From Neoechinorhynchus agilis (taxonomy: Eukaryota; Animalia; Acanthocephala), in contig CM121343.1 of the NCBI GenBank assembly GCA_051530055.1, positions 4,682,389 through 4,746,388 of the forward strand: DNA of 64,000 nucleotides, given 5' to 3'. Under the pieces are notes generated by a model. The model saw only the letters and a list, made by a program, of their open reading frames with translations, did no database searches and had not been told where the DNA came from. Below are positions 36,583 through 64,000 of this stretch, piece after piece (the first letter of the stretch is position 1; every line of letters begins with the position of its first letter). Position numbers and translations under genes: made by a program.

Positions 36583-37478
36583 ATGTGTGTTTCTATGGAA
36601 ACAGGAGACCTAAAGCATAACTATGGTGAGTTAAATTGATTTTATAAAAGCTTATTTAATAAGTTAATTGCAAGTGGATCCAATCATGATTCAAACTAAG
36701 GAGGTGATTGAAACATATGAATCGCGATTGTGCGCGATCTGTCAAGAGGACCGGCCAATTTGCGTGACGTTAGTCAGTTCCAAGTGCAGACACGTTGGTT
36801 GCGGTCCATGTCTAATCAAATGGATTTGCCAAAATAGTTTGGGCATTCTCGCAACAACATGTCCATTGTGTAGAGCGAGGTTATTTGAAGATTGCAATTG
36901 CCTACTTGTCTATTTTGATGGCTCAACGATAGATGGCATGTCCGTTGAAGTTTTTAGATTGATTAGGAAAACAATTAAATCACAAGATAATTCTAGAAAA
37001 GTCCTTCTCGTCAAAAGAGCTCTTTATGTTAGATCTATCTATGTTTCTAGGATCGAAGATCCAAATAATCCATCCAGAGGAAGCCGCCAGAGGTCGCGGT
37101 CACTGACTCCGAATTCCTTTAGTAGGGAACTCTTACATTCTTGAGTATCTCAAGCAAGATTTCCTTGATAGAAACAGTAGGCACCTTTTTGATAAGCTTA
37201 ATCAGTTTCTGGCATTCGAACTGCCAGTATTACGATGTCCACGCAGTGCTGCGTTACCGATCGCACTTCGTGCGCGACGCTGTGGGTTGGAATCCGATGA
37301 GGTAAGAGAATCTATTATTCAAGTCGTGGGAATAGAGTTTGCCGATAAATTTATCCACGAAGCAAGCATGTTCTGCAAAATCTACCCTGGAATCACATAC
37401 GCCCAACGATACTCCTGTTATAACGAATTAACACTTATAGAATTGTGTAAGAAACCTGAAATTGTAGCTTTACTGTAA
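36583..37478 (+). CDS. TOPORS-like RING (C3HC4) E3 ligase, compact; the two halves lie in different frames
   Basis: Exon 36583-36625, 49-bp intron, then CAICQEDRPICVTLVSSKCRHVGCGPCLIKW...CPLC and KRALYVRSIYVSRIED (cf. TOPORS RRTLYRAGARVRNIED). A +1 frame open 37106-37478 encodes DFLDRNSRHLFDKLNQFLAFELPVL...GLESDEV...DKFIHEASMF (cf. EFFRRNPACLHRLVPWLKRELTVL...DLES...EHFIHEF). AATAAA at 37480. Confidence 0.72.
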
Positions 37479-37557: not shown

Positions 37558-37884
37558 GATGACGTCATCAAAAATTTCGATGACGTCATCAAAAATTTCG
37601 ATGACGTCATCAAAAATTTCGATGATGTCATCAAAAATCTCGATGACGTCATCAAAAATCTCGATGACGTCATCAAAAATCACGATGACGTCATCAATAA
37701 TCTCGATGACGTCATCAAAAATCTCGATGACGTCATCAAAAATTTCGATGACGTCATCAAAATTTTCGATGACGTCATCAAAAATTTCGATGACGTCATC
37801 AAACATCTCGATGACGTCATCAAAAATCTCGATGACGTCATCAAAAATTTCGATGACGTCATCAAACATCTCGATGACGTCATC
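37558..37884 (+). repeat. Satellite block 1, A-tract orientation, ~16 units (AAAAATTTC/AAAAATCTC spacers)
   Basis: Units read GATGACGTCATCAAAAATTTC or GATGACGTCATCAAAAATCTC. Confidence 0.95.
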
Positions 37885-40800
37885 ACTAAAATTTTTGATG
37901 AAGACACTTAGATTTTTGATGACGTCACAAAAATTTTTGATAACGTCACTCAAATTTTTCATGACGCTACGAAATTTTTATGACGTCACCGAAATTTTTG
38001 GTGACGTCATCGAGAATTTTGATGACGTCATCGAGATTTTTGATGACTTCATCGAGATTTTTGATGACGTCATCGAGATTTTTGATGACTCATCGAGATT
38101 TTTGATGACGTCATCGAGATTTTTGGTGACGTCATCGAAATTTTTGATGACGTCATCGAGATTTTGGATGACGTCATTGAGATTTTTGATGACGTCATCG
38201 AAATTTTTGATGACGTCATCGAGATTTTGGATGACGTCATCGAAATTTTGCGATGACGACATCGAAATTTTTGATGACGTCATCGCAATGTTTGATGACA
38301 TCATCGAAATTTTTGATGACGTCATCGAGATTTTATATGACGTCATCCAAATTTTTGATGACGTCATCGAAAATTTTGATGACGTCATCGAGATTTATGA
38401 TGACGTCATCGAAAATTTTGATGACGTCATCGAGATTTATGATGACGCCATCGAGATTTTTGATGACGTCATCGAGATTTTGGTAGACGTCATCGAGATT
38501 TTTGTTGACGTCATCGAAATTTTTGATGACGTCATCGAGATTTTTGATGACGTCATCGAAATTTTTGATGACGTCATGGAGATTTTTGATGACTTCATCG
38601 AGATTTTTGATGACGTCATCGATATTTTTGGTGACGTCATCGAAATTTTTGATGACGCCATCGAAATTTTTGATGACGTCATCGAGATTTTTGTTGACGT
38701 CATCGAAATTTTTGATGACGTCATCGAGAATTTTGATGACGCCATCGAGATTTTTGATGGCGTCATCGAGATTTTTGATGACTTCATCGAGATTTTTGAT
38801 GACGTCATCGAGATTTTTGGTGACGTCATCGAGAATTTTGATGACGCCATCGAGATTTTTGATGGCGTCATCGAGATTTTTGATTACTTCATCGAGATTT
38901 TTGATGACGTCATCGAGATTTTTTGTGACGCCATCGAAATTTTTATTACGTCATCGAGATTTTACATGACGTCATCGAGATTTTTGATGACGTCATCGAG
39001 ATTTTTGATGGCTTCATCGAGATTTTTGATGACGTCATCGAGATTTTTGGTGACGCCATCGAAATTTTTTTTACGTCATCGAGATTTTACATGACGTCAT
39101 CGAGATTTTTGATGACGTCATCGAGATTTTTGATGACATAATCGAGATTTTTGATGACGTTATCGAGATTTATGATGACGTCATCGAGATGTTTGATGAC
39201 GTCATCGAAATTTTTGATGACGTCATCGAGATTTTTTATGACGTCATCGAAATTTTTGATGACGTCATCGAAATTTTTGATGACATCATCGAGATTTTTG
39301 ATGACGTCATCGAGAATTTTGATTACGTCATCGAGATGTTTGATGACGTCATCGAGATTTTTTATGACGTCATCGAGAATTTTGATGACGTCATCGAAAT
39401 TTTTGATGACGTCATCGAAATTTTTGATGACGTCATCGAAATTTTTGATGACGTCATCGAGATTTTTGATGACGTCATCGAGATTTTGGATGACGTCATC
39501 GTTATTTTGGATGACGTCATCGAGATTTTTGATGACATCATCGAAATTTTTGATGACGCCATCGAGTTTTTGGATGACGTCATCGAAATTTTTGAAGACG
39601 TCATCGCAATTTTTGATGACGTCATCGAAATTTTTGATGACGTCATCGAGATTTTATATGACGTCATCTAAATTTTTGATGACGTCATCAAAATTTTTTA
39701 TGAAGTCATCGAGATTTTTGGTGACGTCATCGAGATTTTTGATGACGTCATCGCGATTTTATATGACGTCATCGCCATTTTTGATGACGTCATCGCCATT
39801 TTTGATGACGTCATCGCGATTTTTGATGACGTCATCGCCATTTTTGATGACGTCATCGCTATGGCGTCATCGCGATTTTTGATGACGTCATCGCCATTTT
39901 TGATGACGTTATAGCCATTTTTGATGACGTCATCGCGATTTTTGATAACGTCATCGCCATTTTTGATGACGCCATCGCCATGACGTCATCGCGATTTTTG
40001 ATGACGTCATCGCCATTTTTGATGACGTCGTCGCGATTTTTGATGACGTCATCGCCATTTTTGATGACGTCATCGCGATTTTTGATGACGTCATCGCCAT
40101 TTTTGATGACGTCATCGCCATGACGTCATCGCGATTTTTGATGACGTCATCGCCATTTTTGATGACGTCATCGCGATTTTTGATGACGTCATCGCCATTT
40201 TTGATGACGTCATCGCGATTTTTGATGACGTCATCGCCATTTTTGATGACGTCATCGCCATGACGTCATCGCGATTTTTGATGACGTCATCGCCATTTTT
40301 GATGACGTCATCGCCATGACGTCATCGCGATTTTTGATGACGTCATCGCCATTTTTGATGACGTCATCGCCATGACGTCATCGCCATGACGTCATCGCCA
40401 TTTTTGATGACGTCATCGCCATGACGTCATCGCGATTTTTGATGACGTCATCGCCATTTTTGATGACGTCATCGCCATTTTTGATGACGTCATCGCCATT
40501 TTTGATGACGTCATCGCCATTTTTAATGACGTCATCGCCATTTTTGATGACGTCATCGCCATGACGTCATCGCGATTTTTGATGACGTCATCGCCATTTT
40601 TGATGACGTCATCGCGATTTTTGATGACGTCATCGCGATTTTTGATGACGTCATCGCCATTTTTGATGACGTCATCGCCATGACGTCATCGCGATTTTTG
40701 ATGACGTCATCGCCATTTTTGATGACGTCATCGCGATTTTTGATGACGTCATCGCGATTTTTGATGACGTCATCGCCATTTTTGATGACGTCATCGCCAT

Positions 40801-43800
40801 GACGTCATCGCGATTTTTGATGACGTCATCGCCATTTTTGATGATGTCATCGCGATTTTTGATGACGTCATCGCCATTTTGGATGACGTCATCGCCATGA
40901 CGTCATCGCGATTTTTGATGACGTCATCGCGATTTTTGACGTAGTCATCGCCATGACGTCATCGCAGATGACGTCATCGCGATTTTTGATGACGTCATCG
41001 CCATTTTTGATGACGTCATCGCCATTTTTGATGACGTCATCGCAATGACGTCATCGCAATTTTTGATGACGTCATCGCCATTTTTGATGACGTCATCGCC
41101 ATGACGTCATCGCCATTTTCGATGACGTCGTCGCTATGACGTCATCGCGCATTTTGATGACGTCATCGCGATTTTTGATGACGTCATCGCCATGACGTCA
41201 TCGCCATTTTTGATGACGTCATCGCCATGACGTCATCGCGATTTTTTGATGACGTCATCGCAATGACGTATTTGTCTTTTTTGGTGACGTCATCGCCATT
41301 TTGTATGTCGTAATCGTCATGACGTCATCGCGATTTTTGATGACGTCATCGCCATTTTTGATGACGTCATCGCCATGGCGTTATCGCGATTTTTGATGAC
41401 GTCATCGCCATGACGTCATCGCCATTTTTGATGATGTCATCGCCATTTTTGATGACGCCATCGCCATTTTGGATGACGTCATCGCAATGACGTCATCGCC
41501 ATTTTTGATGACGTCATCGCGATTTTTGATGACGTCATCGCGATTTTTGACGTAGTCATCGCCATTTTATATGACGTCATCGCCATTACGTCATCGCGAT
41601 TTTTGATGACGTCATCGCGATTTTTGATGACGTCATCGCCATTTTTGATGACGTCATCGAAACCACAAACCACAAACCCATGACGTCATCATGACGTCAT
41701 CGGATGACGTCATCGCCATTTTTGATGACGTCATCGCCATTTTTGATGACGTCATCGCCATTTTTGATGACGTCATCGCCATGACGTCATCGCCATTTTC
41801 GATGACGTCGTCGCTATGACGTCATCGCGCATTTTGATGACGTCATCGCCATTTTTGATGACGTCATCGCCATGACGTCATCGCCTTTTTGGATGACGTC
41901 ATCGCCATGACGTAATCGCGATTTTTGATGACGTCATCGCCATTTTTGATTACGTCATCGCCATGACGTCATCGCGATTTTTGATGACGTCATCGCCATT
42001 TTTGATGACGTCATCGCCATGACGTCATCGCCATTTTTGATGACGTCATCGCGATTTTTGATGACGTCATCGCGATTTTTGATGACGTCATCGCCATTTT
42101 TGATGACGTCATCGCCATGACGTCATCGCGATTTTTGGTGACGTCATCGCCATTTTTGATGACGTCATCGCCATGACGTCATCGCGATTTTTGATGACGT
42201 CATCGTCATTTTTGATGACGTCATCGCCATGCCGTCATCGCCATTTTTGATAACGTCATCGCCATGACGTCATCGCATTTTTTTGATGACGTCATCGCGA
42301 TTTTTGATGACGTCATCGCCATGTTTGATGACGTCATCGCCATGTCGTCATCGCGATTTTCGATGACGTCATCGCCATTTTTTATAACGTCATCGCCATG
42401 TCGTCATCGCCATTTTTGATGACGCCATCGCCATGACGTCATCGCGATTTTTGATGACGTCATCGCCATTTTTGATGACGTCATCGCCATGACGTCATCG
42501 CGATTTTTGATGACGTCATCGCCATTTTTGATGACGTCATCGCGATTTTTGATGACGTTATCGCCATTTTTGATGACGTCATCGCCATGACGTCATCGCG
42601 ATTTTTTGATGACGTCATCGCCATTTTGTATGACTTCATCGCCATGACGTCATCGCCTTTTTTGGTGACGTCATCGCCTTTTTTGGTGACGTCATCGCCA
42701 TTTTTGATGTCGTAGTCGTCATGACGTCATCGCGATTTTTGATGACGTCATCGCCATTTTTGATGACGTCATCGCAATTTTTGATGACGTCATCGCAATT
42801 TGTGATGACGTCATCGCCATTTTGATGACGTCATCGCCATGAAGTCATCGCGATTTTTGATGACGTCATCGCCATGACGTCATCGCCATTTTTGATGATG
42901 TCATCGCGATTTTTTATGACGTCATCGCCATTTTGGATGACGTCATCGCCATTTTGGATGACGTCATCGCCATGACGTCATCGCCATTTTTGATGACGTC
43001 ATCGCCATTTTTGATGACGTCATCGCGATTTTTGATGACGTCATCGCCATGACGTCATCGCGATTTTTGATGACGTCATCGCCATTTTTGATGACGTCAT
43101 CGCCATGACGTCATCGCCATTTTCGATGACGTCGTCGCTATGACGTCATCGCGCATTTTGATGACGTCATCGTTATTTTTGATGACGTCATCGCCATGAC
43201 GCCATCGCTATTTTTGATGACGTCATCGCCATTTTTGATGACGTCATCGCCATTTTTTATGACGTCATCGCCATTTTTGATTACGTCATCGCCATTTTTG
43301 ATGACGTCATCGCAATGACGTCATCGCGATTTTTGATGACGTCATCGTCATTTTTGATGACGTCATCGCCATGACGTCATCGCATTTTTGATGACGTCAT
43401 CGCCATTATTGATGACGTCATCGCCATTTTTGATGACGTCATCGCCATGTTTGATGACGTCATCGCCATGACGTCATCGCGATTTTTGATGACGTCATCG
43501 CCATTTTTGATTACGTCATCGCCATGACGTCATCGCGATTTTTGATGACGTCATCGCGATTTTTGATGACGTCATCGCGATTTTTGATGACGTCATCGCC
43601 ATGTTTTATGACGTCATCGCAATTTTTGATAACGTCATCGCCATTTTTGATGACGTCATCGCCATGACGTCATCGCCATTTTTGATGACGTCATCGCGAT
43701 TTTTGATGACGTCATCGCGATTTTTGATGACGTCATCGCAATTTTTGATGACGTCATCGCGTATTTTGATGGCGTCATCGCAATTTTTGATGACGTCATC

Positions 43801-46800
43801 GCCATTTTTGATGACGTCATCGCCATGACGTCATCGCCATTTTTGATGACGTCATCGCCATGACGTAATCGCGATTTTTGATGACGTCATCGCCATTTTT
43901 GATGATGTCATCGCCATGTTATATGACGTCATCGCCATGACGTCATCGCCATTTTTGATGACGTCATCGCCGTGACGTCATCGCGATTTTTGATTACGTC
44001 ATCGCCGTGACGTCATCGCCATTACGTCATCGCGATTTTTGATTACGTCATCGTCATTTTTGATGACGTCATCGCCATGACGTCATCGCCATGACGTCAT
44101 CGCCATTTTTGATGACGTCATCGCCATGTTTGATGACGTCATCGACATGACGTCATCGCGATTTTTGATGACGTCATCGCCATTTTTGATGACGTCATCG
44201 CCATTTTTGATGACGTCATCGCCATGTTTGATGACGTCATCGCCATGACGTCATCGCGATTTTTGATGACGTCATCGCCATTTTTGATGACGTCATCGCC
44301 ATGACGTCATCGCCATTTTTGATGACGTTATCGCGATTTTTGGTGACGTCATCGCCATTTTTGATGACGTCATCGCCATGACGTCATCGCGATTTTTAAT
44401 GACGTCATCGCCATTTTTGATGACGTCATCGCCATGACGTCATCGCCTTTTTTGGTGACGTCATTGCCATTTTTGATGTCGTCATCGTCATGACGTCATC
44501 GCGATTTTTGATGACGTCAACGCCATTTTTGATGACGTCATCGCCATTTTATATGACGTCATCGCCATGACGTCATCGCGATTTTTGATCACGTCATCGC
44601 CATGACGTCATCGCCATTTTTGATGATGTCATCGCGATTTTTGATGACGTCATCGCCATGACGTCATCACCATTTTTGATGACGTCATCGCCATGACGTC
44701 ATCGCCATTTTTGATGACGTCATCGCGATTTTTGATGACGTCATCGCCATTTTTGATGACGTCATCGCCATGACGTCATCGCCATTTTTGATGACGTCAT
44801 CGCCATTTTTGATGACGTCATCGCGATTTTTGTGACGTCATCGCCATTTTTGATGACGTCATCGCCATTTTTGATGACGTCATCGCGATTTTTGATGACG
44901 TCATCGCCATTTTTGATGACGTCATCGCCATGACGTCATCGCGATTTTTGATGACGTCATCGCCATTTTTGATGACGTCATCGCATTTTTGATGACGTCA
45001 TCGCCATTTTTGATGACGTCATCGCCATTTTTGATGACGTCATCGCCATGACGTCATCGCATTTTTGATGACGTCATCGCCATTTTTGATGACGTCATCG
45101 CCATGACGTCATCGCGATTTTTGATGATGTCATCGTCATTTTTGATGACGTCATCGCCATGACGTCATCGCCATGACGTCATCGCCATTTTTGATGACGT
45201 CATCGCCATTTTAATCATCGCGATTTTTGATGACGTCATCGCCATTTTTGATGACGTCATCGCCATTTTTGATGACGTCATCGCCATTTTTGATGACGTC
45301 ATCGCATTTTTAATGACGTCATCGCCATTTTGATGACGTCATCGCCATGACGTCATCGCGATTTTTGATGACGTCATCGCCATCTGATGACGTCTCCGCA
45401 TTTTGACGACGTCATCGCGATTTTTGATGACGTCATCGCCATTTTTGATGACGTCATCGCCATGACGTCATCGCGATTTTTGATGACGTCATCGCCATTT
45501 TTGATGACGTCATCGCCATTTTTGATGACGTCATCGCCATTTTTGATGACGTCATCGCCATGACGTCATCGCGATTTTTGATGACGTCATCGCGATTTTT
45601 GACGTAGTCATCGCCATTTTTGATGACGTCATCGCCATGACGTCATCGCGATTTTTGATGACGTCATCGCCATTTTTGATGACGTCATCGCCATTTTTGA
45701 TGACGTCATCGCAATGACCACATCGCAATTTTTGATGACGTCATCGCCATTTTTGATGACGTCATCGCCATGACGTCATCGCCATTTTCGATGACGTCGT
45801 CGCTATGACGTCATCGCGCATTTTGATGACGTCATCGCGATTTTTGATGACGTCATCGCCATGACGTCATCGCCATTTTTGATGACGTCATCGCCATGAC
45901 GTCATCGCGATTTTTTGATGACGTCATCGCAATGACGTATTTGTCTTTTTTGGTGACGTCATCGCCATTTTGTATGTCGTAATCGTCATGACGTCATCGC
46001 GATTTTTGATGACGTCATCGCCATTTTTGATGACGTCATCGCCATGACGTTATCGCGATTTTTGATGACGTCATCGCCATGACGTCATCGCCATTTTTGA
46101 TGATGTCATCGCCATTTTTGATGACGCCATCGCCATTTTGGATGACGTCATCGCAATGACGTCATCGCCATTTTTGATGACGTCATCGCGATTTTTGATG
46201 ACGTCATCGCGATTTTTGACGTAGTCATCGCCATTTTATATGACGTCATCGCCATTACGTCATCGCGATTTTTGATGACGTCATCGCGATTTTTGATGAC
46301 GTCATCGCCATTTTTGATGACGTCATCGCCATTTTTGATGACGTCATCGCCATTTTTGATGACGTCATCGCCATTATGACGTCACTGACGTCATCGCCAT
46401 TTTCGATGACGTCGTCGCTATGACGTCATCGCGCATTTTGATGACGTCATCGCCATTTTTGATGACGTCATCGCCATGACGTCATCGCCTTTTGATGACG
46501 TCATCGCCATGACGTAATCGCGATTTTTGATGACGTCATCGCCATTTTTGATTACGTCATCGCACATGTTTTTCAACGTCATCGCCATTTTTGATGACGT
46601 CATCGCGATTTTTGATGACGTCATCGCGATTTTTGATGACGTCATCGCCATTTTTGATGACGTCATCGCCATGACGTCATCGCGATTTTTGGTGACGTCA
46701 TCGCCATTTTTGATTACGTCATCGCCATGACGTCATCGCGATTTTTGATGACGTCATCGCCATGACGTCATCGCGATTTTTGATGACGTCATCGTCATTT

Positions 46801-49800
46801 TTGATGACGTCATCGCCATGCCGTCATCGCCATTTTTGATAACGTCATCGCCATGACGTCATCGCATTTTTTTGATGACGTCATCGCGATTTTTGATGAC
46901 GTCATCGCCATGTTTGATGACGTCATCGCCATGTCGTCATCGCGATTTTCGATGACGTCATCGCCATTTTTTATAACGTCATCGCCATGTCGTCATCGCC
47001 ATTTTTGATGACGCCATCGCCATGACGTCATCGCGATTTTTGATGACGTCATCGCCATTTTTGATGACGTCATCGCCATGACGTCATCGCGATTTTTGAT
47101 GACGTCATCGCCATTTTTGATGACGTCATCGCGATTTTTGATGACGTTATCGCCATTTTTGATGACGTCATCGCCATGACGTCATCGCGATTTTGATGAC
47201 GTCATCGCCATTTTGTATGACTTCATCGCCATGACGTCATCGCCTTTTTTGGTGACGTCATCGCCTTTTTTGATGACGTCATCGCCATTTTTGATGTCGT
47301 AGTGTCATGACGTCATCGCGATTTTTGATGACGTCATCGCCATTTTTGATGACGTCATCGCAATTTTTGATGACGTCATCGCGATTTTTGATGACGTCAT
47401 CGCCATGACGTCATCGCCATTTTTGATGATGTCATCGCGATTTTTTATGACGTCATCGCCATTTTGGATGACGTCATCGCCATTTTGGATGACGTCATCG
47501 CCATGACGTCATCGCCATTTTTGATGACGTCATCGCGATTTTTGATGACGTCATCGCCATGACGTCATCGCGATTTTTGATGACGTCATCGCCATTTTTG
47601 ATGACGTCATCGCCATGACGTCATCGCCATTTTCGATGACGTCGTCGCTATGACGTCATCGCGCATTTTGATGACGTCATCGTTATTTTTGATGACGTCA
47701 TCGCCATGACGCCATCGCTATTTTTGATGACGTCATCGCCATTTTTGATGACGTCATCGCCATTTTTTATGACGTCATCGCCATTTTTGATTACGTCATC
47801 GCCATGAGGTCATAGCGATTTTTGATGACGTCATCGCATTTACGTCATCGCGATTTTTGATGACGTCATCGTCATTTTTGATGACTTCATCGCCATGACG
47901 TCATCGCCATGACGTCATCGCCATGACGTCATCGCCATTTTTGATGACGTCATCGCCATGTTTGATGACGTCATCGCCATGACGTCATCGCGATTTTTGA
48001 TGACGTCATCGCCATTTTTGATTACGTCATCGCCATGACGTCATCGCGATTTTTGATGACGTCATCGCGATTTTTGATGACGTCATCGCGATTTTTGATG
48101 ACGTCATCGCCATGTTTTATGACGTCATCGCAATTTTTGATAACGTCATCGCCATTTTTGATGACGTCATCGCCATGACGTCATCGCCATTTTTGATGAC
48201 GTCATCGCGATTTTTGATGACGTCATCGCGATTTTTGATGACGTCATCGCAATTTTTGATGACGTCATCGCGTATTTTGATGGCGTCATCGCAATTTTTG
48301 ATGACGTCATCGCCATTTTTGATGACGTCATCGCCATGACGTCATCGCCATTTTTGATGACGTCATCGCCATGACGTAATCGCGATTTTTGATGACGTCA
48401 TCGCCATTTTTGATGATGTCATCGCCATGTTATATGACGTCATCGCCATGACGTCATCGCCATTTTTGATGACGTCATCGCCGTGACGTCATCGCGATTT
48501 TTGATTACGTCATCGCCGTGACGTCATCGCGATTTTTGATGACGTCATCGCCATTACGTCATCGCGATTTTTGATTACGTCATCGTCATTTTTGATGACG
48601 TCATCGCCATGACGTCATCGCCATGACGTCATCGCCATTTTTGATGACGTCATCGCCATGTTTGATGACGTCATCGACATGACGTCATCGCGATTTTTGA
48701 TGACGTCATCGCCATTTTTGATGACGTCATCGCCATTTTTGATGACGTCATCGCCATGTTTGATGACGTCAATTTTTGATGACGTCATCGCCATTTTTGA
48801 TGACGTCATCGCCATGACGTCATCGCCATTTTGATGACGTTATCGCGATTTTTGATGACGTCATCGCCATTTTTGATGACGTCATCGCCATGACGTCATC
48901 GCGATTTTTGATGACGTCATCGCCATTTTTGATGACGTCATCGCCATGACGTCATCGCCATTTTTGATGACGTCATTGCCATTTTTGATGTCGTCATCGT
49001 CATGACGTCATCGTTATTTATGATGACGTCATCATTTTTGATGACGTCATCGCCATTTTATATGACGTCATCGCCATGACGTCATCGCGATTTTTGATCA
49101 CGTCATCGCCATGACGTCATCGCCATTTTTGATGATGTCATCGCGATTTTTGATGACGTCATCGCCATGACGTCATCACCATTTTTGATGACGTCATCGC
49201 CATTTTTGATGACGTCATCGCAGATGACGTCATCGCCATTTTTGATGACGTCATCGCCATGACGTCATCGCCATTTTTGATGACGTCATCGCCGTGACGT
49301 CATCGCGATTTTTGATGACGTCATCGCCATTTTTGATGACGTCATCGCCATGTTTGATGACGTCATCGACATGACGTCATCGCGATTTTTGATGACGTCA
49401 TCGCCATTTTTGATGACGTCATCGCCATTTTTGATGACGTCATCGCCATGTTTGATGACGTCATCGCCATGACGTCATCGCGATTTTTGATGACGTCATC
49501 GCCATTTTTGATGACGTTATCGCGATTTTTGGTGACGTCATCGCCATTTTTGATGACGTCATCGCCATGACGTCATCGCGATTTTTGATGACGTCATCGC
49601 CATTTTTGATGACGTCATCGCCATGACGTCATCGCCTTTTCTGGTGACGTCATTGCCATTTTTGATGTCGTCATCGTCATGACGTCATCGCGATTTTTGA
49701 TGACGTCAACGCCATTTTTGATGACGTCATCGCCATTTTTTATAACGTCATCGCCATGTCGTCATCGCCATTTTTGATGACGCCATCGCCATGACGTCAT

Positions 49801-49837
49801 CGCGATTTTTGATGACGTCATCGCCATTTTTGATGAC
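37885..49837 (-). repeat. Satellite block 2, T-tract orientation
   Basis: GAGATTTTT/GAAATTTTT spacers to ~39740, then GCCATTTTT/GCGATTTTT mixed with 14-bp units. Confidence 0.95.
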
Positions 49838-52800: not shown

Positions 52801-55800
52801 GGCGATGACGTCATCAAAAATGGCGATGACGTCATCAAAAATGGCGATGACGTCATCAAAAATGGCGATGACGTCATCAAAAATGGCGATGACGTCATCA
52901 AAAATGGCGATGACGTCATCAAAAATGGCGATGACGTCATAAAAATCGCGATGACGTCATCAAAAATGGCGATGACGTCATCAAAAATGGCGATGACGTC
53001 ATCAAAAATGGCGATGACGTCATCAAAAATGGCGATGACGTCATGAGAAATGGCGATGAAGTCATCAAAAATGGCGATGACATCATCAAAAATGGCGATG
53101 ACGTCATAAAAAATAGCGATGACGTCATCAAAAATCGCGATGACGTCATCAAAAATCGCGATGACGTCATCAAAAATGGCGATGACGTCATCAAAAATGG
53201 CGATGACGTCATCAAAAATGGCGATGACGTCATCAAAAATGGCGATGACGTCATCAAAAATGGCGATGACGTCATAAAAATGGCGATGACGTCATGAAAA
53301 TGGCGATGACGTCATAAAAATGGCGATGACGTCATCAAAAATCGCGATGACGTCATCAAAAATGGCGATGACGTCATCAAAAATGACGATGACGTCATCA
53401 AAAATGGCGATGACGTCATCAAAAATGGCGATGACGTCATCAAAAATGGCGATGACGTCATCAAAAATGGCGATGACGTCATCAAAAATGGCGATGACGT
53501 CATCAAAAATCGCGATGACGTCATCAAAATCGCGATGACGTCATCAAAAATCGCGATGACGTCATCAAAAATGACGATGACGTCATCAAAAATCGCGATG
53601 ACGTCATCAAAAATCGCGATGACGTCATCAAAAATCACGATGACGTCACAAAAATGGCGATGACGTCATCAAAAATGGCGATGACGTCATCAAAAATCGC
53701 GATGACGTCATCAAAAATGGCGATGACGTCATCAAAAATGGCGATGACGTCATCAAAAATGGCGATGACGTCATCAAAAATGGCGATGATGTAATATAAA
53801 ATCGCAATGACGTCATCAATAATCGCGATGACGTCATCAAAAATGGCGATAACGTCATCAAAAATCGCGATGACGTCATCAAAAATCGCGATGACGTCAT
53901 CAAAAATCGCGATGACGTCATCTAAAATGGCGATGACGTCATCAAAAATCGCGATGACGTCACAAAAATGGCGATGACGTCATAAAAAATTGCGATGACG
54001 TCATCAAAAATCACGATGACGTCATCAAAAATCGCGATGACGTCATCAAAAATGGCGATGACGTCATCAAAAATCGCGATGACGTCATGGCGATGACGTC
54101 ATCAAAAATAGCGATGACGTCATCAAAAATCACGATGACGTCACAATCGCGATGACGTCATCAAAAATGGCGATGACGTCATCAAAAATCACGATGACGT
54201 CATGGCGATGACGTCATCAAAAATGGCGATGACGTCATCAAAAATAGCGATGACGTCATCAAAATGGCGATGACGTCATCAAAAATGGCGATGACGTCAT
54301 CAAAAATCGCGATGACGTCATAAAAATGGCGATGACGTCATCAAAAATGGCGATGACGTCATCAAAAATCGCGATGACGTCATCAAAAATGGCGATGACG
54401 TCATCAAAAATGGCGATGACGTCATCAAAAATCACGATGACGTCATGGCGATGACGTCATCAAAAATGGCGATGACGTCATCAAAAATCACGATGACGTC
54501 ATGGCGATGACGTCATCAAAAATGGCGATGACGTCATCAAAAATCACGATGACGTCATGGCGATGACGTCATCAAAAATCGCGATGACGTCATCAAAAAT
54601 GGCGATGACGTCATCAAAATGGCGATGACGTCATCAAAAATCGCGATGACGTCATCAAAAATCACGATGACGTCACAAAATGGCGATGACGTCATCAAAA
54701 ATCGCGATGACGTCATCAAAAATCGCGATGACGTCATCAAAAATGGCGATGACGTCATCAAAAATGGCGATGACGTCATCAAAAATGGCGATGACGTCAT
54801 CAAAAATGGCGATGACGTCATCAAAAATGGCGATGACGTCATCAAAAATCTCGATGACGTCATCAAAAATGGCGATGACGTCATCAAAAATCGCGATGAC
54901 GTCATCAAAAATGGCGATGACGTCATCAAAAATCGCGATGACGTCACAAAAATGGCGATGACGTCATCAAAAATCGCGATGACGTCATCAAAAATCACGA
55001 TGACGTCAAAAAATGGCGATGACGTCATCAAAAATGGCGATGACGTCATCAAAAATGGCGATGACGTCATGAGAAATGGCGATGACGTCATCAAAAATGG
55101 CGATGACGTCATCAAAAATCGCGATGACGTCATGAAAAATGGCGATGACGTCATCAAAAATGGCGATGACGTCATCAAAAATGGCGATGACGTCATCAAA
55201 AATGGCGATGACGTCATCAAAAATGGCGATGACGTCATCAAAAATGGCGATGACGTCATCAAAAATGGCGATGACATCATCAAAAATGGCGATGACGTCA
55301 TCAAAAATAGCGATGACGTCATCAAAAATGGCGATGACGTCATCAAAAATCTCGATGACGTCATCAAAAATGGCGATGACGTCATCAAAAATGGCGATGA
55401 CGTCATCAAAAATGGCGATGACGTCATCAAAAATGGCGATCACGTCATCAAAAATGGCGATGACGTCATCAAAAATCGCGATGACGTCATCAAAAATCGC
55501 GATGACGTCATCAAAAATGGCGATGACGTCATCAAAAATTGCGATGACGTCATCAGAAATCTCGATGACGTCATCAAAAATGGCGATGACGTCATCAAAA
55601 ATGGCGATCACGTCATCAAAAATGGCGATGACGTCATCAAAAATGGCGATGACGTCATCAAAAACAGCGATGACGTCATCAAAAATGGCGATGACGTCAC
55701 AAAAATCGCGATGACGTCATCAAAAATGGCGATGACGTCATCAAAAATTGCGATGACGTCATCAAAAATTGCGATGACGTCATTAAAAATGGCGATGACG

Positions 55801-58800
55801 TCATCAAAAATCGCGATGACGTCATCAAAAATGGCGATGACGTCATGAGAAATGGCGATGACGTCATCAAAAATGGCGATGACGTCATCAAAAATGGCGA
55901 TGACGTCATCAAAAATGGCGATGACGTCATCAAAAATCGCGATGACGTCATCAAAAATCGCGATGACGTCATAAAAATGGCGATGACGTCATCAAAAATG
56001 GCGATGACGTCATCAAAAATGGCGATGACGTCATCAAAAATGGCGATGACGTCATCAAAAATGGCGATGACGTCATGAAAATGGCGATGACGTCATAAAA
56101 ATGGCGATGACGTCATCAAAAATGGCGATGACGTCATCAAAAATGGCGATGACGTCATCAAAAATGGCGATGACGTCATCAAAAATGGCGATGACGTCAT
56201 CAAAAATGGCGATCACGTCATCAAAAATGGCGATGACGTCATCAAAAATGGCGATTACGTCATCAAAAATGGCGATGACGTCATCAAAAATGGCGATGAC
56301 GTCATCAAAAATCGCGATGACGTCATCAAATATCGCGATGACGTCATCAAAAATCGCGATGACGTCATCAAAAATGGCGATGACGTCATCAAAAATGGCG
56401 ATGACGTCATCAAAAATCGCGATGACGTCATCAAAAATCGCGATGACGTCATCAAAAATGGCGATGACGTCATCAAAAATCGCGATGACGTCATCAAAAA
56501 TGGCGATACCGTCATCAAAAATGGCGATGACGTCATCAAAAATGGCGATGATGTAATATAAAATCGCAATGACGTCATCAATAATCGCGATGACGTCATC
56601 AAAAATGGCGATAACGTCATCAAAAATCGCGATGACGTCATCAAAAATCGCGATGACGTCATCAAAAATCGCGATGACGTCATAAAAAATTGCGATGACG
56701 TCATTAAAAATAGCGATGACGTCATCAAAAATCGCGATGACGTCATCAAAAATGGCTATGACGTCATCAATAATCGCGATGACGTCATCAAAAATGGCGA
56801 TGACGTCATCAAAAATAGCGATGACGTCATCAAAAATCACGATGACGTCATCAAAAATCGCGATGACGTCATCAAAAATGGCGATGACGTCATCAAAAAT
56901 CGCGATGACGTCATCATAGATGGCGATGACGTCATCAAAAATGGCGATCACGTCATCAAAAATGGCGATGACGTCATCAAAATGGCGATGACGTCATCAA
57001 AAATGGCGATGACGTCATCAAAAATTGCGATGACGTCATCAAAAATGGCGATGACGTCATCAAAAATGGCGATGACGTCATCAAAAATCGCGATGACGTC
57101 ATCAAAAATGGCGATGACGTCATCAAAAATGGCGATGACGTCATCAAAAATAGCGATGACGTCATCAAAAATAGCGATGACGTCATCAAAAATCGCGATG
57201 ACGTCATCAAAAATCGCGATCACGTCATCAAAAATGGCGACGACGCCATCAAAAATACGTCATCAAAAATAACGATGACGTCATGAAAAGTGGCGATGAC
57301 GTCATCAAAAATCGCGATGACGTCATCAAAAATGGCGATGACGTCATCAAAAATGGCGATGACGTCATCAAAAATCGCGATGACGTCATCAAAAATAGCG
57401 ATGACGTCATCAAAAATGGCGATGACGTCATCAGAAATCGCGATGACGTAATCAGATATCGCGATGACGTCATCAAAAATTGCGATGACGTCATCAAAAA
57501 TGGCGATGACGTCATCAAAAATGGCGATGACGTCATCAAAAATAGCGATGACGTCATCAAAAATGGCGATGACGTCATCAAAAATCTCGATGACGTCATC
57601 AAAAATGTCGATGACGTCATCAAAAATCTCGATGACGTCATCAAAAATCTCGATGACATCATCGAAAATCTCGATGACGTCATCAAAAATCTCGATGACG
57701 TCATCAAAAATCTCGACGACGTCATCAAAAATCTCGATGACGTCATAAAAATTGCGATGACGTCATGAGTAATGGCGATGACGTCATCAAAAATTGCGAT
57801 GACGTCATGAGAAATGGCGATGACGTCATCAAAAAATGGCGATGACGTCATGATAAATGGCGATGACGTCATCAAAAATGGCGAGGACGTCATCAAAAAT
57901 GGCGATGACGTCATCAAAAATGGCGATGACGTAATCAAAAATGGCGATGACGTCATCAAAAATGGGGATGACGTCATCAAAAATGGCGATGACGTCATCA
58001 AAAATGGCGATGACGTCATCAAAAATGGCGATGACATCATCAAAAATGGCGATGACGTCATCAAAAATAGCGATGACGTCATCAAAAATGGCGATGACGT
58101 CATCAAAAATCTCGATGACGTCATCAAAAATGGCGATGACGTCATCAAAAATGGCGATGACGTCATCAAAAATGGCGATGACGTCATCAAAAATCGCGAT
58201 GACGTCATCAAAAATCGCGATGACGTCATCAAAAATGGCGATGACGTCATCAAAAATTGCGATGACGTCATCAAAAATCTCGATGACGTCATCAAAAATG
58301 GCGATGACGTCATCAAAAATGGCGATCACGTCATCAAAAATGGCGATCACGTCATCAAAAATGGCGATGACGTCATCAAAAACAGCGATGACGTCATCAA
58401 AAATGGCGATGACGTCATCAAAAATCGCGATGACGTCATCAAAAATGGCGATGACGTCATCAAAAATTGCGATGACGTCATCAAAAATTGCGATGACGTC
58501 ATTAAAAATGGCGATGACGTCATCAAAAATCGCGATGACGTCATCAAAAATCGCGATGACGTCATCAAAAATGGCGATGACGTCATCAAAAATGGCGATG
58601 ACGTCATCAAAAATCGCGATGACGTAATCAAAAATGGCGATGACGTCATAAAAATGGCGATGACGTCATCAAAAATCGCGATGATGTCATCAAAAATTGC
58701 GATGACGTCATCAAAAATGGCGATGACGTCATCAAAAATCCCGATGACGTCATAAAAAATCGCGATGATGTCATCAAAAATGGCGATGACGTCATCAAAA

Positions 58801-61800
58801 ATGGCGATGAGGTCATAAAAAATGTCGATGACGTCATCAAAAATGGCGACGACGTCATCAAAAATGGCGATGACGTCATGAGAAATGGCGATGAAGTCAT
58901 CAAAAATGGCGATGACATCATCAAAAATGGCGATGACGTCATAAAAAAAGCGATGACGTCATCAAAAATGGCGATGACGTCATCAAAAATCGCGATGACG
59001 TCATAAAAATTGGCGATGACGTCATAAAAAATGGCGATGACGTCATCAAAAATAGCGATGACGTCATGAAAATGGCGATGACGTCATAAAAATGGCGATG
59101 ACATCATCAAAAATGGCGATGACGTCATCAAAAATGGCGATGACGTCATCAAAAATCTCGATGACGTCATCAAAAATGGCGATGACGTCATCAAAAATGG
59201 CGATCACGTCATCAAAAGTGGCGATGACGTCATCAAAAATGGCGATTACGTCATCAAAAATGGCGGCGACGTCATCAAAAATGGCGATGACGTCATCAAA
59301 AATCGCGATGACGTCATCAAATATCGCGATGACGTCATCATTAATGGCGATGACGTCATCAAAAATGGCGATGACGTCATCAAAAATGGCGATGACGTCA
59401 TCAAAAATGGCGATGATGTAATCAAAAATCGCAATGACGTCATCAATAATCGCGATGACGTCATCAAAAATGGCGATAACGTCATCAAAAATCGCGATGA
59501 CGTCATCAAAAATCGCGATGACGTCATCAAAAATGGCGATGACGTCATCAAAAATGGCGATGACGTCATCAAAAATCGCGATGACGTCATCTAAAATGGC
59601 GGTGACGTCATCAAAAATCGCGATGACGTCATCAAAAATGACGATGACGTCATACAAAATTGCGATGACGTCATCAAAAATTGCGATGACGTCATTAAAA
59701 ATGGCGATGACGTCATCAAAAATCGCGATGACGTCATCAAAAATGGCGATGACGTCATCAAAAATCGCGATGACGTAATCAAAAATGGCGATGACGTCAT
59801 CAAAAATGGCGATGACGTCATCAAAAATCGCGATGATGTCATCAAAAATTGCGATGACGTCATCAAAAATCCCGATGACGTCATAAAAAATCGCGATGAT
59901 GTCATCAAAAATGGCGATAACGTCATCAAAAATGGCGACGACGTCATCAAAAATGGCGATGACGTCATGAGAAATGGCGATGAAGTCATAGAAAATGGCG
60001 ATGACATCATCAAAAATGGCGATGACGTCATAAAAAATAGCGATGACGTCATCAAAAATGGCGATGACGTCATCAAAAATCGCGATTACGTCATCAAAAA
60101 TCGCGATGACGTCATAAAAATTGGCGATGACGTCATAAAAAATGGCGATGACGTCATCAAAAATGGCGATGACGTCATCAAAAATGGCGATGACGTCATG
60201 AAAATGGCGATGACGTCATAAAAATGGCGATGACGTCATCAAACATCGCGATGACGTCATCAAAAATGGCGATGACGTCATCAAAAATGACGATGACGTC
60301 ATCAAAAATGGCGATGACGTCATCAGAAATGGCGATCACGTCATCAAAAATGGCGATGACGTCATCAAAAATGGCGATTACGTCATCAAAAATGGCGGCG
60401 ACGTCATCAAAAATGGCGATGACGTCATCAAAAATGGCGATGACGTCATCAAAAATCGCGATGACGTCATCAAAAATCGCGATGACGTCATCAAAAATGG
60501 CGATGACGTCATCAAAAATCGCGATGACGTCATCAAAAATCGCGATGACGTCATCAAAAATGGCGATGACGTCATAAAAAATTGCGCTGACGTCATTAAA
60601 AATAGCGATGACGTCATCAAAAATCGCGATGACGTCATCAAAAATGGCTATGACGTCATCAAAAATCGCGATGACGTCATCAAAAACGGCGATGACGTCA
60701 TCTAAAATAGCGATGACGTCATCAAAAATGGCGATGACGTCATCAAAAATCGCGATGACGTCATCAAAGATGGCGATTACGTCATCAAAAATGGCGATCA
60801 CGTCATCAAAAATGGCGATGACGTCATCAAAATGGCGATGACGTCATCAAAAATGGCGATGACGTCATCAAAAATTGCGATGACGTCATTAAAAATGGCG
60901 ATGACGTCATCAAAAATGGCGATGACGTCATCAAAAATCGCGATGACGTCATCAAAAATGGCGATGACGTCATCAAAAATGACGATGACGTCATCAAAAA
61001 TGGCGATGACGTCATCAAAAATAGCGATGACGTCATCAAAAATAGCGATGACGTCATCAAAAATCGCGATGACGTCATCAAAAATCGTGATGACGTCATC
61101 AAAAATCGCGATGACGTAATCAAAAATGGCGATGACGTCATCAAAAATAACAATGACGTCATGAAAAGTGGCGATGACGTCATCAAAAATCGCGATGACG
61201 TCATCAAAAATGGCGATGACGTCATCAAAAATGGCGATGACGTCATCAAAAATGGCGATGACGTCATCACAAATGGCGACGACGTCATCAAAAATGGCGA
61301 TGACGTCATCAGAAATCGCGATGACGTCAAAAAAATTGGCGATGACGTCATCAAAAATCGCGATGACGTAATCAAAAATGGCGATGACGTCATCAAAAAT
61401 GACGAGGACGTCATCAAAAATGGCGATGACGTCATCAAAAATGGCGATGACGTCATCAAAAATGGGGATGACGTCATCAAAAATGGCGATGACATCATCA
61501 AAAATGGCGATGACGTCATATAAAATGGCGATGACGTCATCAAAAATGGCGATGACGTCATCAAAAATTGCGACGACGTCATCAAAAATCGCGATGACGT
61601 CATCAAAAATCGCGATGACGTCATCAAAAATCGCGATGACGTCATCAAAAATGGCGATGACGTCATCAAAAATGGCGATGACGTCATCAAAAATCGCGAT
61701 GACGTCATCAAAAATGGCGATGACGTCATCAAAAATGGCGATGACGTCATCAAAAATGGCGATGACGTCATCAAAAATGGCGATGACGTCATCAAAAATG

Positions 61801-63549
61801 GCGATGACGTCATCAAAAATGGCGATGACGTCATCAAAAATCGCGATGACGTCATCAAAAATGGCGATGACGTCATCAAAAATGGCGATGACGTCATCAA
61901 AAATGGCGATGACGTCATCAAAAATGGCGATGACGTCATCAAAAATCGCGATGACGTCATCAAAAATGGCGATGACGTCATCAAAAATGGCGATGACGTC
62001 ATCAAAAATGGCGATGACGTCATCAAAAATGGCGATGACGTCATCAAAAATGGCGATGACGTCATCAAAAATGGCGATGACGTCATCAAAAATCGCGATG
62101 ACGTCATCAAAAATGGCGATGACGTCATCAAAAATGGCGATGACGTCATCAAAAATTGCGATGACGTCATCAAAAATGGCGATGACGTCATCAAAAATCG
62201 CGATGACGTCATCAAAAATGGCGATGACGTCATCAAAAATGGCGATGACGTCATCAAAAATCGCGATGACGTCATCAAAAATCGCGATGACGTCATCAAA
62301 AATGGCGATGACGTCATCAAAAATCGCGATGACGTCATCAAAAATCGCGATGACGTCATCAAAAATCGCGATGACGTCATCAAAAATCGCGATGACGTCA
62401 TCAAAAATGGCGATGACGTCATCAAAAATGACGATTACGTCATCAAAAATGGCGATGACGTCATCAAAAATCGCGATGACGTCATCAAAAATGGCGATGA
62501 CGTCATCAAAAATCGCGATGACGTCATCAAAAATGGCGATGACGTCATCAAAAATCGCGATGACGTCATCAAAAATAGTGATGACGTCATCAAAAATCGC
62601 GATGACGTCATCAAAAATGGCGATGACGTCATCAAAAACGGCGATGACGTCATCAAAAATGGCGATGACATCATCAAAAATGGCGATGACCTCATCAAAA
62701 ATGGCGATGACGTCATCAAAAATGGCGATAACGTCATCAAAAATGGCGATGACGTCATCAAAAATCGCGATGACGTCATCAAAAATGGCGATAACGTCAT
62801 CAAAAATGGCGATGACGTCATCAAAAATGGCGATGACATCATCAAAAATGGCGATGACGTCATCAAAAATGGCGATGACGTCATCAAAAATCTCGATGAC
62901 GTCATCAAAAATGGCGATGACGTCATCAAAAATCGCGATGACGTCATCAAAAATGGCGACGACGTCATCAAAAATGGCGATGACGTCATCAAAAATGGCG
63001 ATGACGTCATCAAAAATGGCGATGACGTCATCAAAAATGGCGATGGCGTCATCAAAAATGGCGATGACGTCATCAAAAATCGCGATGACGTAATCAAAAA
63101 TGGCGATGACGTCATCAAAAATGGCGATGACGTCATCAAAAATCGCGACGATGTCATCAAAAATGGCGATGACGTCATCAAAAATGGCGATGACGTCATC
63201 AAAAATGGCGACGACGTCATCAAAAATGGCGATGACGTCATCAAAAATGGCGATGACGTCATCAAAAATTTCGATGACGTCATCAAAAATCGCGATGACG
63301 TCAACACAAATCTCGATGACGTCATCAAAAATCTCGATGACGTCATGAAAAATCTCGATGACGTCATCAAAAATCTCGATGACGTCATGAAAAATCTCGA
63401 CGACGTCATCAAAAATCTCGATGACGTCATCAAAAAATTTCGATGACGTCGTTAAAAATTTCGATGACGTCATCCAAAATCTCGATGACGTGATCAAAAA
63501 TCTTGATGACGTCATCAAAAATTTCGATGACGTCATCGAAAATCTCGAT
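49838..63549 (+). repeat. Satellite block 3, A-tract orientation
   Basis: Starts with a 56-bp higher-order repeat, continues as mostly AAAAATGGC/AAAAATCGC 21-mers, and ends with AAAAATCTC/AAAAATTTC units from ~63260. Confidence 0.95.
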
Positions 63550-64000
63550 TGGATTCTTCCCCGTATTTTGTGACTTTATAGATTTTTGTTCATAAAAACT
63601 TCTCCAGATTTGGAACGAATTGATCGAAATAGGCTAGACGGACGGCCGAACGGTCAAGTTTAAACAATGTTCAATTAACTCATAAATTGTAACAACAACG
63701 TCGAAATGAAGACCAGATTTTCAATCAGCGGATAGAGAAATTCCAGAGTGACACCACGAGGACCAACGGTGAAGTATCAGCGATATTCAATTTGGCGAAG
63801 TTACTTGAAAAATTTCGATTTTACCCCGTATTTTTTGATGTCATAGGTTTTTGTAACGTTACCAAATTTTTTAAATTTTTCCACGTATTTTTTGGCGTCA
63901 TATGTTTTTGTGACGTCAGCAAATAAATTTTATTCCTCCGCGTATTTCGTCACGTCGAGCATTTTGATCATAAAAACCTAACAGTGATAGCTACGGCGCA

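Follow-up and report, generated by a model that had tools for sequence, protein, structure and literature searches.

A 21-bp satellite built on a CRE palindrome in Neoechinorhynchus agilis, a candidate (peri)centromeric repeat

The CENP-B box of alpha and minor satellites is a conserved element that stands out within variable monomers. Other centromeric satellites are characterised by short dyad symmetries associated with non-B-form DNA (Kasinathan and Henikoff 2018, PMC5889037), and (peri)centromeric satellites of Tribolium form macro-dyads (PMC13081366). In another acanthocephalan, Acanthocephalus lucii, one satellite (ALc1) was located at all centromeres by FISH (PMC11758010). In the mating-type region of fission yeast, ATF/CREB proteins at CRE-like sites nucleate heterochromatin (PMC10863984, PMC9389250).

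Here we describe a 26-kb array of 21-bp units, each built around a CRE palindrome, in the window (the whole 64,000-nt stretch of N. agilis DNA that was analysed). We know of no centromere DNA in eoacanthocephalans. Neither centromeres nor satellites come up in the published N. agilis genome paper (PMC12690905), and the 21-bp family provides a concrete candidate for FISH and ChIP in an animal with three chromosomes and a 46-Mb genome. New in this analysis are the distribution of the family over six places, the equal conservation of core and spacer, the lack of support for a methylation switch and a candidate CREB binder.

The array shares several features with each of these systems. Like ALc1-type (peri)centromeric satellites (PMC11758010), it is a single tandem family with one region per chromosome; it has higher-order repeats and decayed edges, is shared between chromosomes and lies beside other satellites. 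However, its unit is 21 bp, compared to 298 bp for ALc1, with no relation in sequence, and its arrays are 5-26 kb as assembled and adjoin genes. As in the dyad-symmetry satellites (PMC5889037), the units contain a short perfect dyad (12 bp), and the single strands fold much better than shuffled sequences, but the dyad here is also a textbook transcription-factor site and the satellite is only a candidate for centromere DNA. Its two inverted arms (12-14 kb), with their potential to form a large hairpin or cruciform, resemble the Tribolium macro-dyads (PMC13081366), although they are restricted to the scaffold-3 array, have one junction, and extend over tens of kb rather than megabases. As with the CENP-B box, a protein-binding sequence (putative in this case) recurs within a satellite and the genome codes for a DNA-binding protein that would match it, but the CRE box varies as much as the rest of its unit, and the candidate binder is a bZIP rather than a transposase-derived protein. 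Finally, the Atf1/Pcr1 sites of S. pombe also combine ATF/CREB-type sites with silent, repeat-containing chromatin, and offer a mechanism by which a CRE array could seed heterochromatin (PMC10863984, PMC9389250). In contrast to the thousands of sites here, the yeast region has few, and the yeast factor belongs to an ATF2-like subfamily of which no gene was detected in N. agilis.

Organisation of the array and its surroundings

An exact search found 1,096 perfect TGACGTCA sites in the window, all but one of them (1,095) within the array (Table 1), whereas dinucleotide-preserving shuffles contained 2.6 on average and never more than 9. The array sites thus have the perfect full-site palindrome of a cAMP response element. 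The 12-bp palindrome GATGACGTCATC occurs perfectly 824 times and the 10-mer ATGACGTCAT 1,048 times, while 1,274 cores can be recognised with up to two mismatches (~1,270 unit copies). The claim of the sequence-only reading that more than 1,000 perfect CREs are present was therefore correct; its estimate of roughly 1,200 or more holds for the number of units but is too high for perfect sites.

As expected for satellite DNA, the short 21-bp unit is repeated head to tail over a long stretch. TRF placed the array at 37557-63543 with a period of 21 (~622 and 666 copies over 26 kb), and the consensus unit of the family is GATGACGTCATCGCCATTTTT. Neighbouring sites are most often 21 bp (748 cases) or 14 bp (113 cases) apart, and spacings of 42 or 35 bp mark places where a core is mutated. 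As the assembly is an ONT/Illumina hybrid (MaSuRCA/Flye, with ONT reads from 50 pooled worms; PMC12690905), the exact number of units and the 20- and 22-bp spacings may include assembly error. Four of the six reading frames of the array are open by construction, and when a 242-aa ORF from the array was used in a protein word search, nothing matched at E ≤ 0.001, which for so repetitive and low-complexity a query is weak evidence that the array is non-coding. A two-unit pattern, looked for exactly in metagenome contigs, gave 0 matches. No relative was found outside the N. agilis genome, and none of the papers that a literature search on TGACGTCA-containing satellites brought up had a relevant title.

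The orientation of the units changes twice, at ~37,880 and at 49,838, as shown by the spacer on the + strand, which is A-rich at 37558-37880, T-rich at 37881-49838 and A-rich again at 49839-63549. The order of elements at the second switch (Table 1) places the breakpoint inside the palindromic core. The two inverted arms that meet here are 12.0 and 13.7 kb long and 92-95% complementary, in any register. The inner part of the left arm contains a segmental duplication of ~4.5-4.7 kb (60-mer offsets of 4511, 4589 and 4669). The right arm (49833-63543 by TRF, 666 copies, 89% matches) is again of GAG/GAA type at its far edge (63000-63549). In single strands, neighbouring cores pair with each other (-18.7 kcal/mol, z = -3.95 relative to shuffles).

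The gene beside the array, previously described as TOPORS-like, gave only weak, sub-threshold RING matches. An AATAAA at about 37478 lies ~75 bp ahead of the array, and the gene end is ~75 bp from it. On the other side, a complex 119/183/347-bp repeat extends ~2.1 kb beyond the end of the window, and its relatives adjoin the arrays on scaffold 1 and on the unplaced contig C30.

Table 1. Positions of the chromosomal arrays and of features in the window
Feature	Position	Strand	Description	Basis or remark
Array on scaffold 1 (C1)	6.178-6.187 Mb		Relative position 0.32	
Array on scaffold 2 (C2)	5.214-5.219 Mb		Relative position 0.32	
Array on scaffold 3 (C3)	4.720-4.746 Mb		Relative position 0.60 (0.40 from nearer end)	The array in the window
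RING-finger gene, last long ORF	window 36668..37144	+	zf-RING_2 (Pfam E=1.5e-4, below gathering score)	ORF list
21-bp satellite array	window 37558-63549		26 kb	Exact search and TRF
Short left block	window 37558..37880		~15 units, A-rich + strand spacer, GAA/GAG-type	Ends at first orientation switch
Left arm, outer	window 37881..39800		T-rich + strand spacer, degenerate GAG/GAA-subfamily units	14-18 perfect CREs per 500 bp
Left arm, inner	window 39801..49838		GCC/GCG-subfamily units and 14-bp short units (56/77-bp higher-order repeats)	TRF, subfamily map
Orientation-switch junction	window 49826..49850		T-type spacer, half core, full core, A-type spacer	Sequence
Right arm	window 49839..63549		A-rich + strand spacer; 56/168-bp higher-order repeats near junction, then mainly plain GCC/GCG 21-mers	
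Complex 119/183/347-bp repeat, start	window 63550..64000		Carries TGACGTCA sites set in A/T runs	

Distribution and conservation of the family

We searched the whole assembly (46,219,100 bases in 102 contigs), in which three chromosome-scale scaffolds of 19.38, 16.38 and 7.82 Mb together make up 94.26%. The satellite family was found at six places only, one region on each of these scaffolds and three unplaced contigs (C30, C40 and C58); the genome-wide search proposed in the sequence-only reading thus yielded five further places besides the array in the window. The six places together account for every one of the 1,408 genome-wide occurrences of a perfect-dimer pattern. For a relaxed CRE-N13-CRE pattern, 2,206 of the 2,230 occurrences are accounted for, and the other ~43 Mb of the scaffolds lack the family but for at most 24 stray site pairs. 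The genome has 5,128 perfect TGACGTCA sites, two thirds of which (~3,416) are in the 21-bp satellite. The assembled arrays are 5.5-26 kb each and ~86 kb in total (0.19% of the assembly), and the array in the window is the largest assembled block of this lineage-specific family.

Two of the unplaced contigs bear on array edges. C30 matches C1:6054198-6056221 at 100% identity before it enters at least 9 kb of satellite; its anchor point is 122 kb from the scaffold-1 array, which gives two blocks on scaffold 1. The flank of C58 was found nowhere else in the assembly, so at least one array edge is unplaced.

Each chromosomal array sits among other satellites (283-bp, 36-bp, 820-bp and 119-bp families), and those beside the arrays differ from scaffold to scaffold. 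The 21-bp family is the one family common to all three satellite clusters examined; the 119-bp family is shared too, but is dispersed. Between 3 and 14% of exact 63-mers, words the length of three units, are common to the arrays on C1, C2 and C3, and 41% to those on C30 and C40. Such recurrence of one family at several loci, evolving in concert, is as expected for satellite DNA.

The sequence-only reading had described the CRE core as conserved and the spacer as variable, a pattern it considered compatible with selection on the site but also with palindrome-driven homogenisation. In an unbiased test on 567 units, whose own sequence played no part in their selection, the minor-base fraction was 1.92% for the core 8-mer and 1.76-1.81% for seven of the nine spacer positions. 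Only three positions of the unit are variable, and these define subfamilies. The described contrast is thus only partly true, and selection on the site is not supported, as the core is no less variable than the spacer (1.9% compared to 1.8%). A functional cAMP response element would be expected to be conserved above its surroundings, and in these 567 units the site is not. Whole units, and not the CRE alone, are kept uniform.

DNA methylation and candidate binding proteins

In vertebrates, methylation of the central CpG of a CRE blocks CREB. As this CpG is present in the site, the array could in principle be a methylation-switchable sink, in which 5mC at the central CpG turns binding on or off, as the sequence-only reading had proposed. 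The genome argues against this. Neither DNMT1 nor DNMT3 was found in it, its single PF00145 locus being DNMT2-type (best PDB matches DNMT2/TRDMT1), and a published survey also reports no Dnmt1 or Dnmt3 in N. agilis (PMC12256650). CpG observed/expected ratios were 0.99-1.18 in six stretches of flanking unique DNA. Transitions at the core CpG were found in 13 and 10 of 567 units, at most about 2-2.5-fold over the other transitions in the core, and no excess was seen at the unit's second CpG. Thus, the footprint of germline CpG methylation (CpG depletion and an excess of CpG-to-TpG changes) was not seen in the units or the flanking DNA. Since this animal is without DNMT1/3, CpG methylation cannot block the sites, and a methylation switch is extremely improbable.

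A potential binder is encoded. The CREB orthologue at C2:11.149 Mb (577-aa ORF, bZIP_1 65.8 bits; best PDB match the CREB1 bZIP, E=2.9e-18) has the basic region of human CREB1 but for three conservative substitutions, as expected if a CREB/ATF factor able to recognise a cAMP response element is present. This near-identity makes binding of the CREB orthologue to the satellite CREs chemically plausible. A Jun orthologue is also encoded. Only two bZIP_1 genes were detected in the genome, and an ATF2/ATF7-type gene was not found there. In other animals the ATF2/ATF7 subfamily is tied to heterochromatin.

The arrays might therefore be a platform for bZIP proteins, occupied by the CREB orthologue or by Jun-containing dimers, which would either titrate the factor or recruit silencers and nucleate heterochromatin. 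The two orthologues, the concentration of perfect sites in the satellite and the lack of DNMT1/3 to block them all favour this explanation, as does the precedent of Atf1-dependent heterochromatin (PMC10863984, PMC9389250). However, a core conserved no better than its spacer and the failure to detect an ATF2/ATF7-type gene beside the two bZIP_1 genes count against it, and we consider it unlikely. Such occupancy would be compatible with a centromeric location. A more specific version, in which the CREB orthologue has been co-opted as a satellite-binding protein that builds pericentric heterochromatin or helps to specify the centromere, in a role like that of CENP-B, is very doubtful on the sequence evidence. 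In this version, thousands of perfect CREs in a single block per chromosome would recruit the protein, in an animal from which CpG methylation and a large share of the regulatory genes have been lost.

The centromere reading and its alternatives

Given one repeat-rich region on each of three chromosomes, a satellite of the centromere region is the most likely explanation for the array, rather than a methylation-controlled switch. We put at about even the chance that it is (peri)centromeric satellite DNA of three monocentric chromosomes, homogenised as whole units. The earlier suggestion that the array might seed heterochromatin or a centromere thus gains support from a family found in one satellite-rich region per scaffold and otherwise on unplaced contigs only. 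A centromeric satellite is expected in one region on every chromosome, which is what we observed for the three scaffolds (94% of the assembly), with the caveats that three chromosomal arrays would fall one per scaffold by chance with p ~0.18 (from scaffold lengths), that two blocks, separated by 122 kb, lie on scaffold 1, and that the C58 edge is unplaced. The congener N. cylindratus has n = 3, with one metacentric, one submetacentric and one acrocentric X chromosome (PMC10592040, supplement), so that its chromosomes are monocentric. None of the array positions (0.32, 0.32 and 0.40 from the nearer end) would correspond to an acrocentric chromosome such as the X of the congener, although the congener is another species and unassembled repeats are not counted. 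The small size of the arrays as assembled, and a gene end only ~75 bp away, also count against a centromere.

Unequal exchange and replication slippage probably maintain the arrays. The self-complementary cores would favour both processes, because each core is able to pair with any of its neighbours when the DNA is single-stranded, and core-to-core pairing would account for the short 14-bp units, for the higher-order repeats and for the orientation switch, of fold-back type, inside the core. The identity of the palindrome as a CRE may be incidental. Alternatively, it may act as a dyad-symmetry or protein-binding 'box', which the resident CREB orthologue could bind. A centromeric role would make this an unusually clean case in the debate on whether short dyads or bound sequence-specific proteins help to define centromeres, because the dyad is a textbook transcription-factor site in a genome that still encodes the factor, and DNA methylation can be left out of account. 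Otherwise, this is an ordinary satellite, whose likeness to a regulatory site is without demonstrated meaning.

Could the satellite be neutral or selfish, with no chromosomal role? It would then have grown in pre-existing repeat islands and spread by ectopic exchange, with its presence once per scaffold a coincidence and the centromeres elsewhere. No part of the unit shows excess conservation, the chance probability of ~0.18 leaves room for coincidence, the arrays are small and close to a gene, and the neighbouring satellites differ among scaffolds, all of which fit this explanation. Against it, the family is absent from the other ~43 Mb of the scaffolds, stray site pairs apart, and is the sole family, bar the dispersed 119-bp one, common to the three clusters. 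On balance we regard a neutral origin as somewhat unlikely. A different concern is that errors of assembly, for example from fold-back chimeric ONT reads, produced the switch at 49,838 and perhaps some of the array's length, and that the true structure is a simple array of one orientation. The assembly does combine noisy ONT reads from pooled worms in a MaSuRCA/Flye hybrid (PMC12690905), the arrays on C1 and C2, as well as those on C30, C40 and C58, have a single orientation, with inverted arms on scaffold 3 only, and the overlap of C30 with C1 indicates redundancy or collapse at another array edge. However, the arms are not mirror images: the mirror diagonal holds only 2.5% of the 45-mers common to both. 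They also differ in content, with 14-bp units and the 4.5-kb duplication throughout the left arm, and GTG-type units and 168-bp repeats in the right. An artefact is thus distinctly unlikely.

The best local alignment between three satellite units and the flanking 119/183/347-bp repeat scored 30, compared to 19.9 +/- 2.4 (maximum 27) for shuffles, which is no more than suggestive of a derivation of the 21-bp satellite from this repeat.

The array on scaffold 3 and its units

The sequence-only reading had described a 26-kb satellite array holding more than 1000 perfect CREs, and both the array and its coordinates in the window (C3:4682389-4746388) proved to be real. An exact search found 1,096 perfect TGACGTCA sites in the window, 1,095 of them within 37558-63549, compared to a chance expectation for the window of 2.6 on average and 9 at most (dinucleotide-preserving shuffles). 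The array on scaffold 3 (C3) also contained 824 perfect copies of the 12-bp palindrome GATGACGTCATC, 1,048 of the 10-mer ATGACGTCAT, and 1,274 recognisable cores with two mismatches or fewer. TRF reported a period of 21 across 37557-63543 of the window; 748 core-to-core distances were 21 bp and 113 were 14 bp.

The array switches orientation twice (see table), and the main switch falls within a core, reading T-type spacer, half core, full core, A-type spacer. Short units of 14 bp occur in the left arm, as does a segmental duplication (~4.5-4.7 kb), and the right arm shows 56/168-bp higher-order repeats near the junction. The density of perfect sites per 500 bp was ~24-26 mid-array, falling to 14-18 toward the left edge and 16-22 toward the right, the profile expected when unequal exchange homogenises an array. 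The two arms, as laid out in an assembly built from pooled ONT reads, are 92-95% complementary whatever the register, and their inversion is reminiscent of the macro-dyad symmetries described for Tribolium satellites (PMC13081366). Duplication by fold-back reads would appear to be ruled out as the source of this layout, because the mirror diagonal holds only 2.5% of the 45-mers shared by the arms. Folded as single-stranded DNA, four units gave -18.7 kcal/mol (shuffles, -10.2 +/- 2.2), with adjacent cores predicted to pair with one another; such pairing would favour slippage and template switching.

Since anchoring on the core biases a test of conservation, we sampled 567 middle units, each flanked by two perfect cores 42 bp apart. 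The minor-base fraction was 1.92% over the eight CRE positions and 1.76-1.81% at seven of the nine spacer positions, so the proposal that the CRE core is conserved while the spacer varies is only partly borne out. The only variable positions of the unit were 14 and 15 (13-50% minor) and 1 (5-7%), which set the subfamilies GCC, GCG, GAG, GAA and GTG. These occur in blocks, with GAG/GAA at both outer edges of the scaffold 3 array and on the unplaced contigs C30, C40 and C58, and GCC/GCG in its interior and on scaffolds 1 and 2 (C1 and C2). Thus, homogenisation acts on whole units, and the CRE is not singled out.

Genome-wide distribution and neighbouring repeats

The assembly comprises 46,219,100 bases in 102 contigs, with pieces of 19.38, 16.38 and 7.82 Mb among them; the published N. 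agilis assembly is Hi-C-scaffolded (102 contigs, 46.2 Mb, N50 16.4 Mb), its three major contigs making up 94.26% of the total (PMC12690905). We located the satellite by sampling rare-variant patterns and retrieving the matching regions, which revealed five places besides the scaffold 3 array. A pattern of two units, in which nine bases separate two perfect 12-mers, had 1,408 matches genome-wide, and the counts in the six places add up to exactly this number. Relaxing the pattern to pairs of CREs at a 21-bp spacing gave 2,230 matches, of which 2,206 lie in the six places or in five remnants at C1:6,059,270-6,068,918. Therefore, the family is limited to one region per chromosome-scale scaffold, plus unplaced contigs. 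The three scaffold arrays lie at relative positions 0.32, 0.32 and 0.60; the chance probability of one array per scaffold, computed from scaffold lengths for three arrays, is ~0.18.

Arrays of the 21-bp satellite, orientation segments and surrounding repeats
Feature	Position	Length	Perfect CREs or content
Scaffold 1 array	C1:6,178,088-6,186,600	8.5 kb	366
Scaffold 2 array	C2:5,213,685-5,219,229	5.5 kb	279
Scaffold 3 array	window 37558-63549	26 kb	1,095
C30 array (unplaced contig)	last 9 kb	9 kb	307
C40 array (unplaced contig)	whole contig	24.6 kb	981
C58 array (unplaced contig)	first 12 kb	12 kb	353
Scaffold 3 array, outer segment	window 37558-37880		A-rich spacer on + strand
Scaffold 3 array, left arm	window 37881-49838		T-rich spacer on + strand
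Scaffold 3 array, right arm	window 49839-63549		A-rich spacer on + strand
Scaffold 1 surroundings	C1:6186610-6208506 (283-bp satellite)	~22 kb (283-bp satellite)	119/236-bp repeat, array, 283-bp satellite
Scaffold 2, before array	C2:5204534-5213668	9 kb	820-bp repeat
Scaffold 2, after array	C2:5219233-5229274	10 kb	36-bp satellite
Scaffold 3 surroundings		2.5 kb (complex repeat)	RING-finger gene end ~75 bp off, array, 119/183/347-bp complex repeat

Comparison of C30:20000-24980 with C1:6052698-6057678 showed 100% identity with C1:6054198-6056221. Beyond this point C30 enters at least 9 kb of 21-bp satellite, whereas scaffold 1 has only about four degenerate units and then transposon-like DNA. 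At this site, which lies 122 kb from the scaffold 1 array, either an array has been collapsed or the haplotypes differ. Because C30 joins scaffold 1 in this way, and C30 and C40 have 41% of exact 63-mers in common, there is probably a second, mostly unplaced satellite block on scaffold 1, 122 kb from the first.

Every chromosomal array lies within a cluster of further tandem repeats. The complex repeat beside the scaffold 3 array occupies window 63550-64000 and ~2.1 kb beyond, and carries paired TGACGTCA sites in A/T runs; its weak alignment to the 21-mer (score 30, compared to 19.9 +/- 2.4 for shuffles) makes it a candidate ancestor of the satellite. The 119-bp family adjoins the scaffold 1 and C30 arrays and is also dispersed on all three scaffolds. 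The 36-bp satellite has another block at C2:5437427-5439294, and neither it nor the 283-bp family showed comparable sharing among the three clusters. Among the families examined, the 21-bp family is the common element restricted to these clusters.

Other repeats were seen alongside. At C58:12001-17509 a 19-bp satellite (CTCGTACACTCTCCTCGCT-type) directly adjoins the 21-bp satellite; its pattern had 125 matches, and the 100 listed were all on C58. C30:1-18077 is an 18-kb GAA-rich simple repeat in which stray CREs number roughly one per kb. Another tandem repeat also bears the CRE, since TGACGTCA recurs at intervals of ~397 bp at C1:3842-13997, the scaffold start, and in a second place, C1:2692545-2693728.

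Possible roles of the satellite

What maintains this family, and does it have a role? The best-supported reading, which we give about an even chance, is that it is a lineage-specific satellite marking the (peri)centromeric region of all three chromosomes. Its upkeep would depend on recombination and slippage, promoted by the self-complementary cores. The chromosomes of the congener N. cylindratus (2n = 5/6, n = 3) are monocentric, as they comprise one metacentric, one submetacentric and one acrocentric X (PMC10592040 supplement); the N. agilis genome paper mentions neither centromeres, satellites nor karyotype (PMC12690905). The CRE likeness of the core may be incidental; alternatively, the core may serve as a dyad-symmetry or protein-binding box, by analogy with what is proposed for centromeres in general (PMC5889037). 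That the satellite has no role at all is a possibility we regard as somewhat unlikely.

Compatible with the centromere-region reading, though in itself improbable, is that the arrays would serve as a bZIP platform, for which the ATF/CREB-dependent heterochromatin of fission yeast offers a precedent (PMC10863984, PMC9389250). A Pfam bZIP_1 scan found two genes in the genome: a CREB orthologue (577-aa ORF, L033:1369-3102, - strand) aligning to human CREB1 at E=2.9e-18 with just three substitutions, all conservative, in the basic region, and a Jun orthologue. Perfect TGACGTCA sites number 5,128 genome-wide, compared to 628 for the reversed control, and ~3,416 of them (two thirds) are inside the satellite; binding is chemically plausible and would matter quantitatively. 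The further proposal, that 5mC at the CRE switches binding, is very hard to sustain. Dnmt1 and Dnmt3 were not found in N. agilis or other syndermatans in a published survey (PMC12256650), and the single PF00145 locus in the genome best matched DNMT2/TRDMT1 (E=6e-34) and bacterial M.HhaI weakly. Six flanking stretches of unique DNA had a CpG o/e of 0.99-1.18. At the core CpG, transitions (13/567 and 10/567) were at most ~2.5-fold over other core transitions, and the second CpG of the unit showed no transition excess in the 567 units.

Minor observations

Outside the satellite, TGACGTCA was still ~2.7-fold commoner than the reversed control. Visual inspection of the CREB orthologue's 577-aa ORF revealed no RRPSY-type kinase-inducible motif, which may be encoded by a different exon or have been lost. 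Elsewhere in the window, a perfect (TGG)80 run at 9506-9745 reads as ~80 histidines in the minus-strand ORF 9454-9945, and a 67-bp satellite spans 25082-28797 (55.6 copies, 93% matches). Two very long uninterrupted ORFs of 2,446 and 707 aa at 12116-22729 (- strand) look, by eye, like a putative BEACH/WD40 neurobeachin-type gene.
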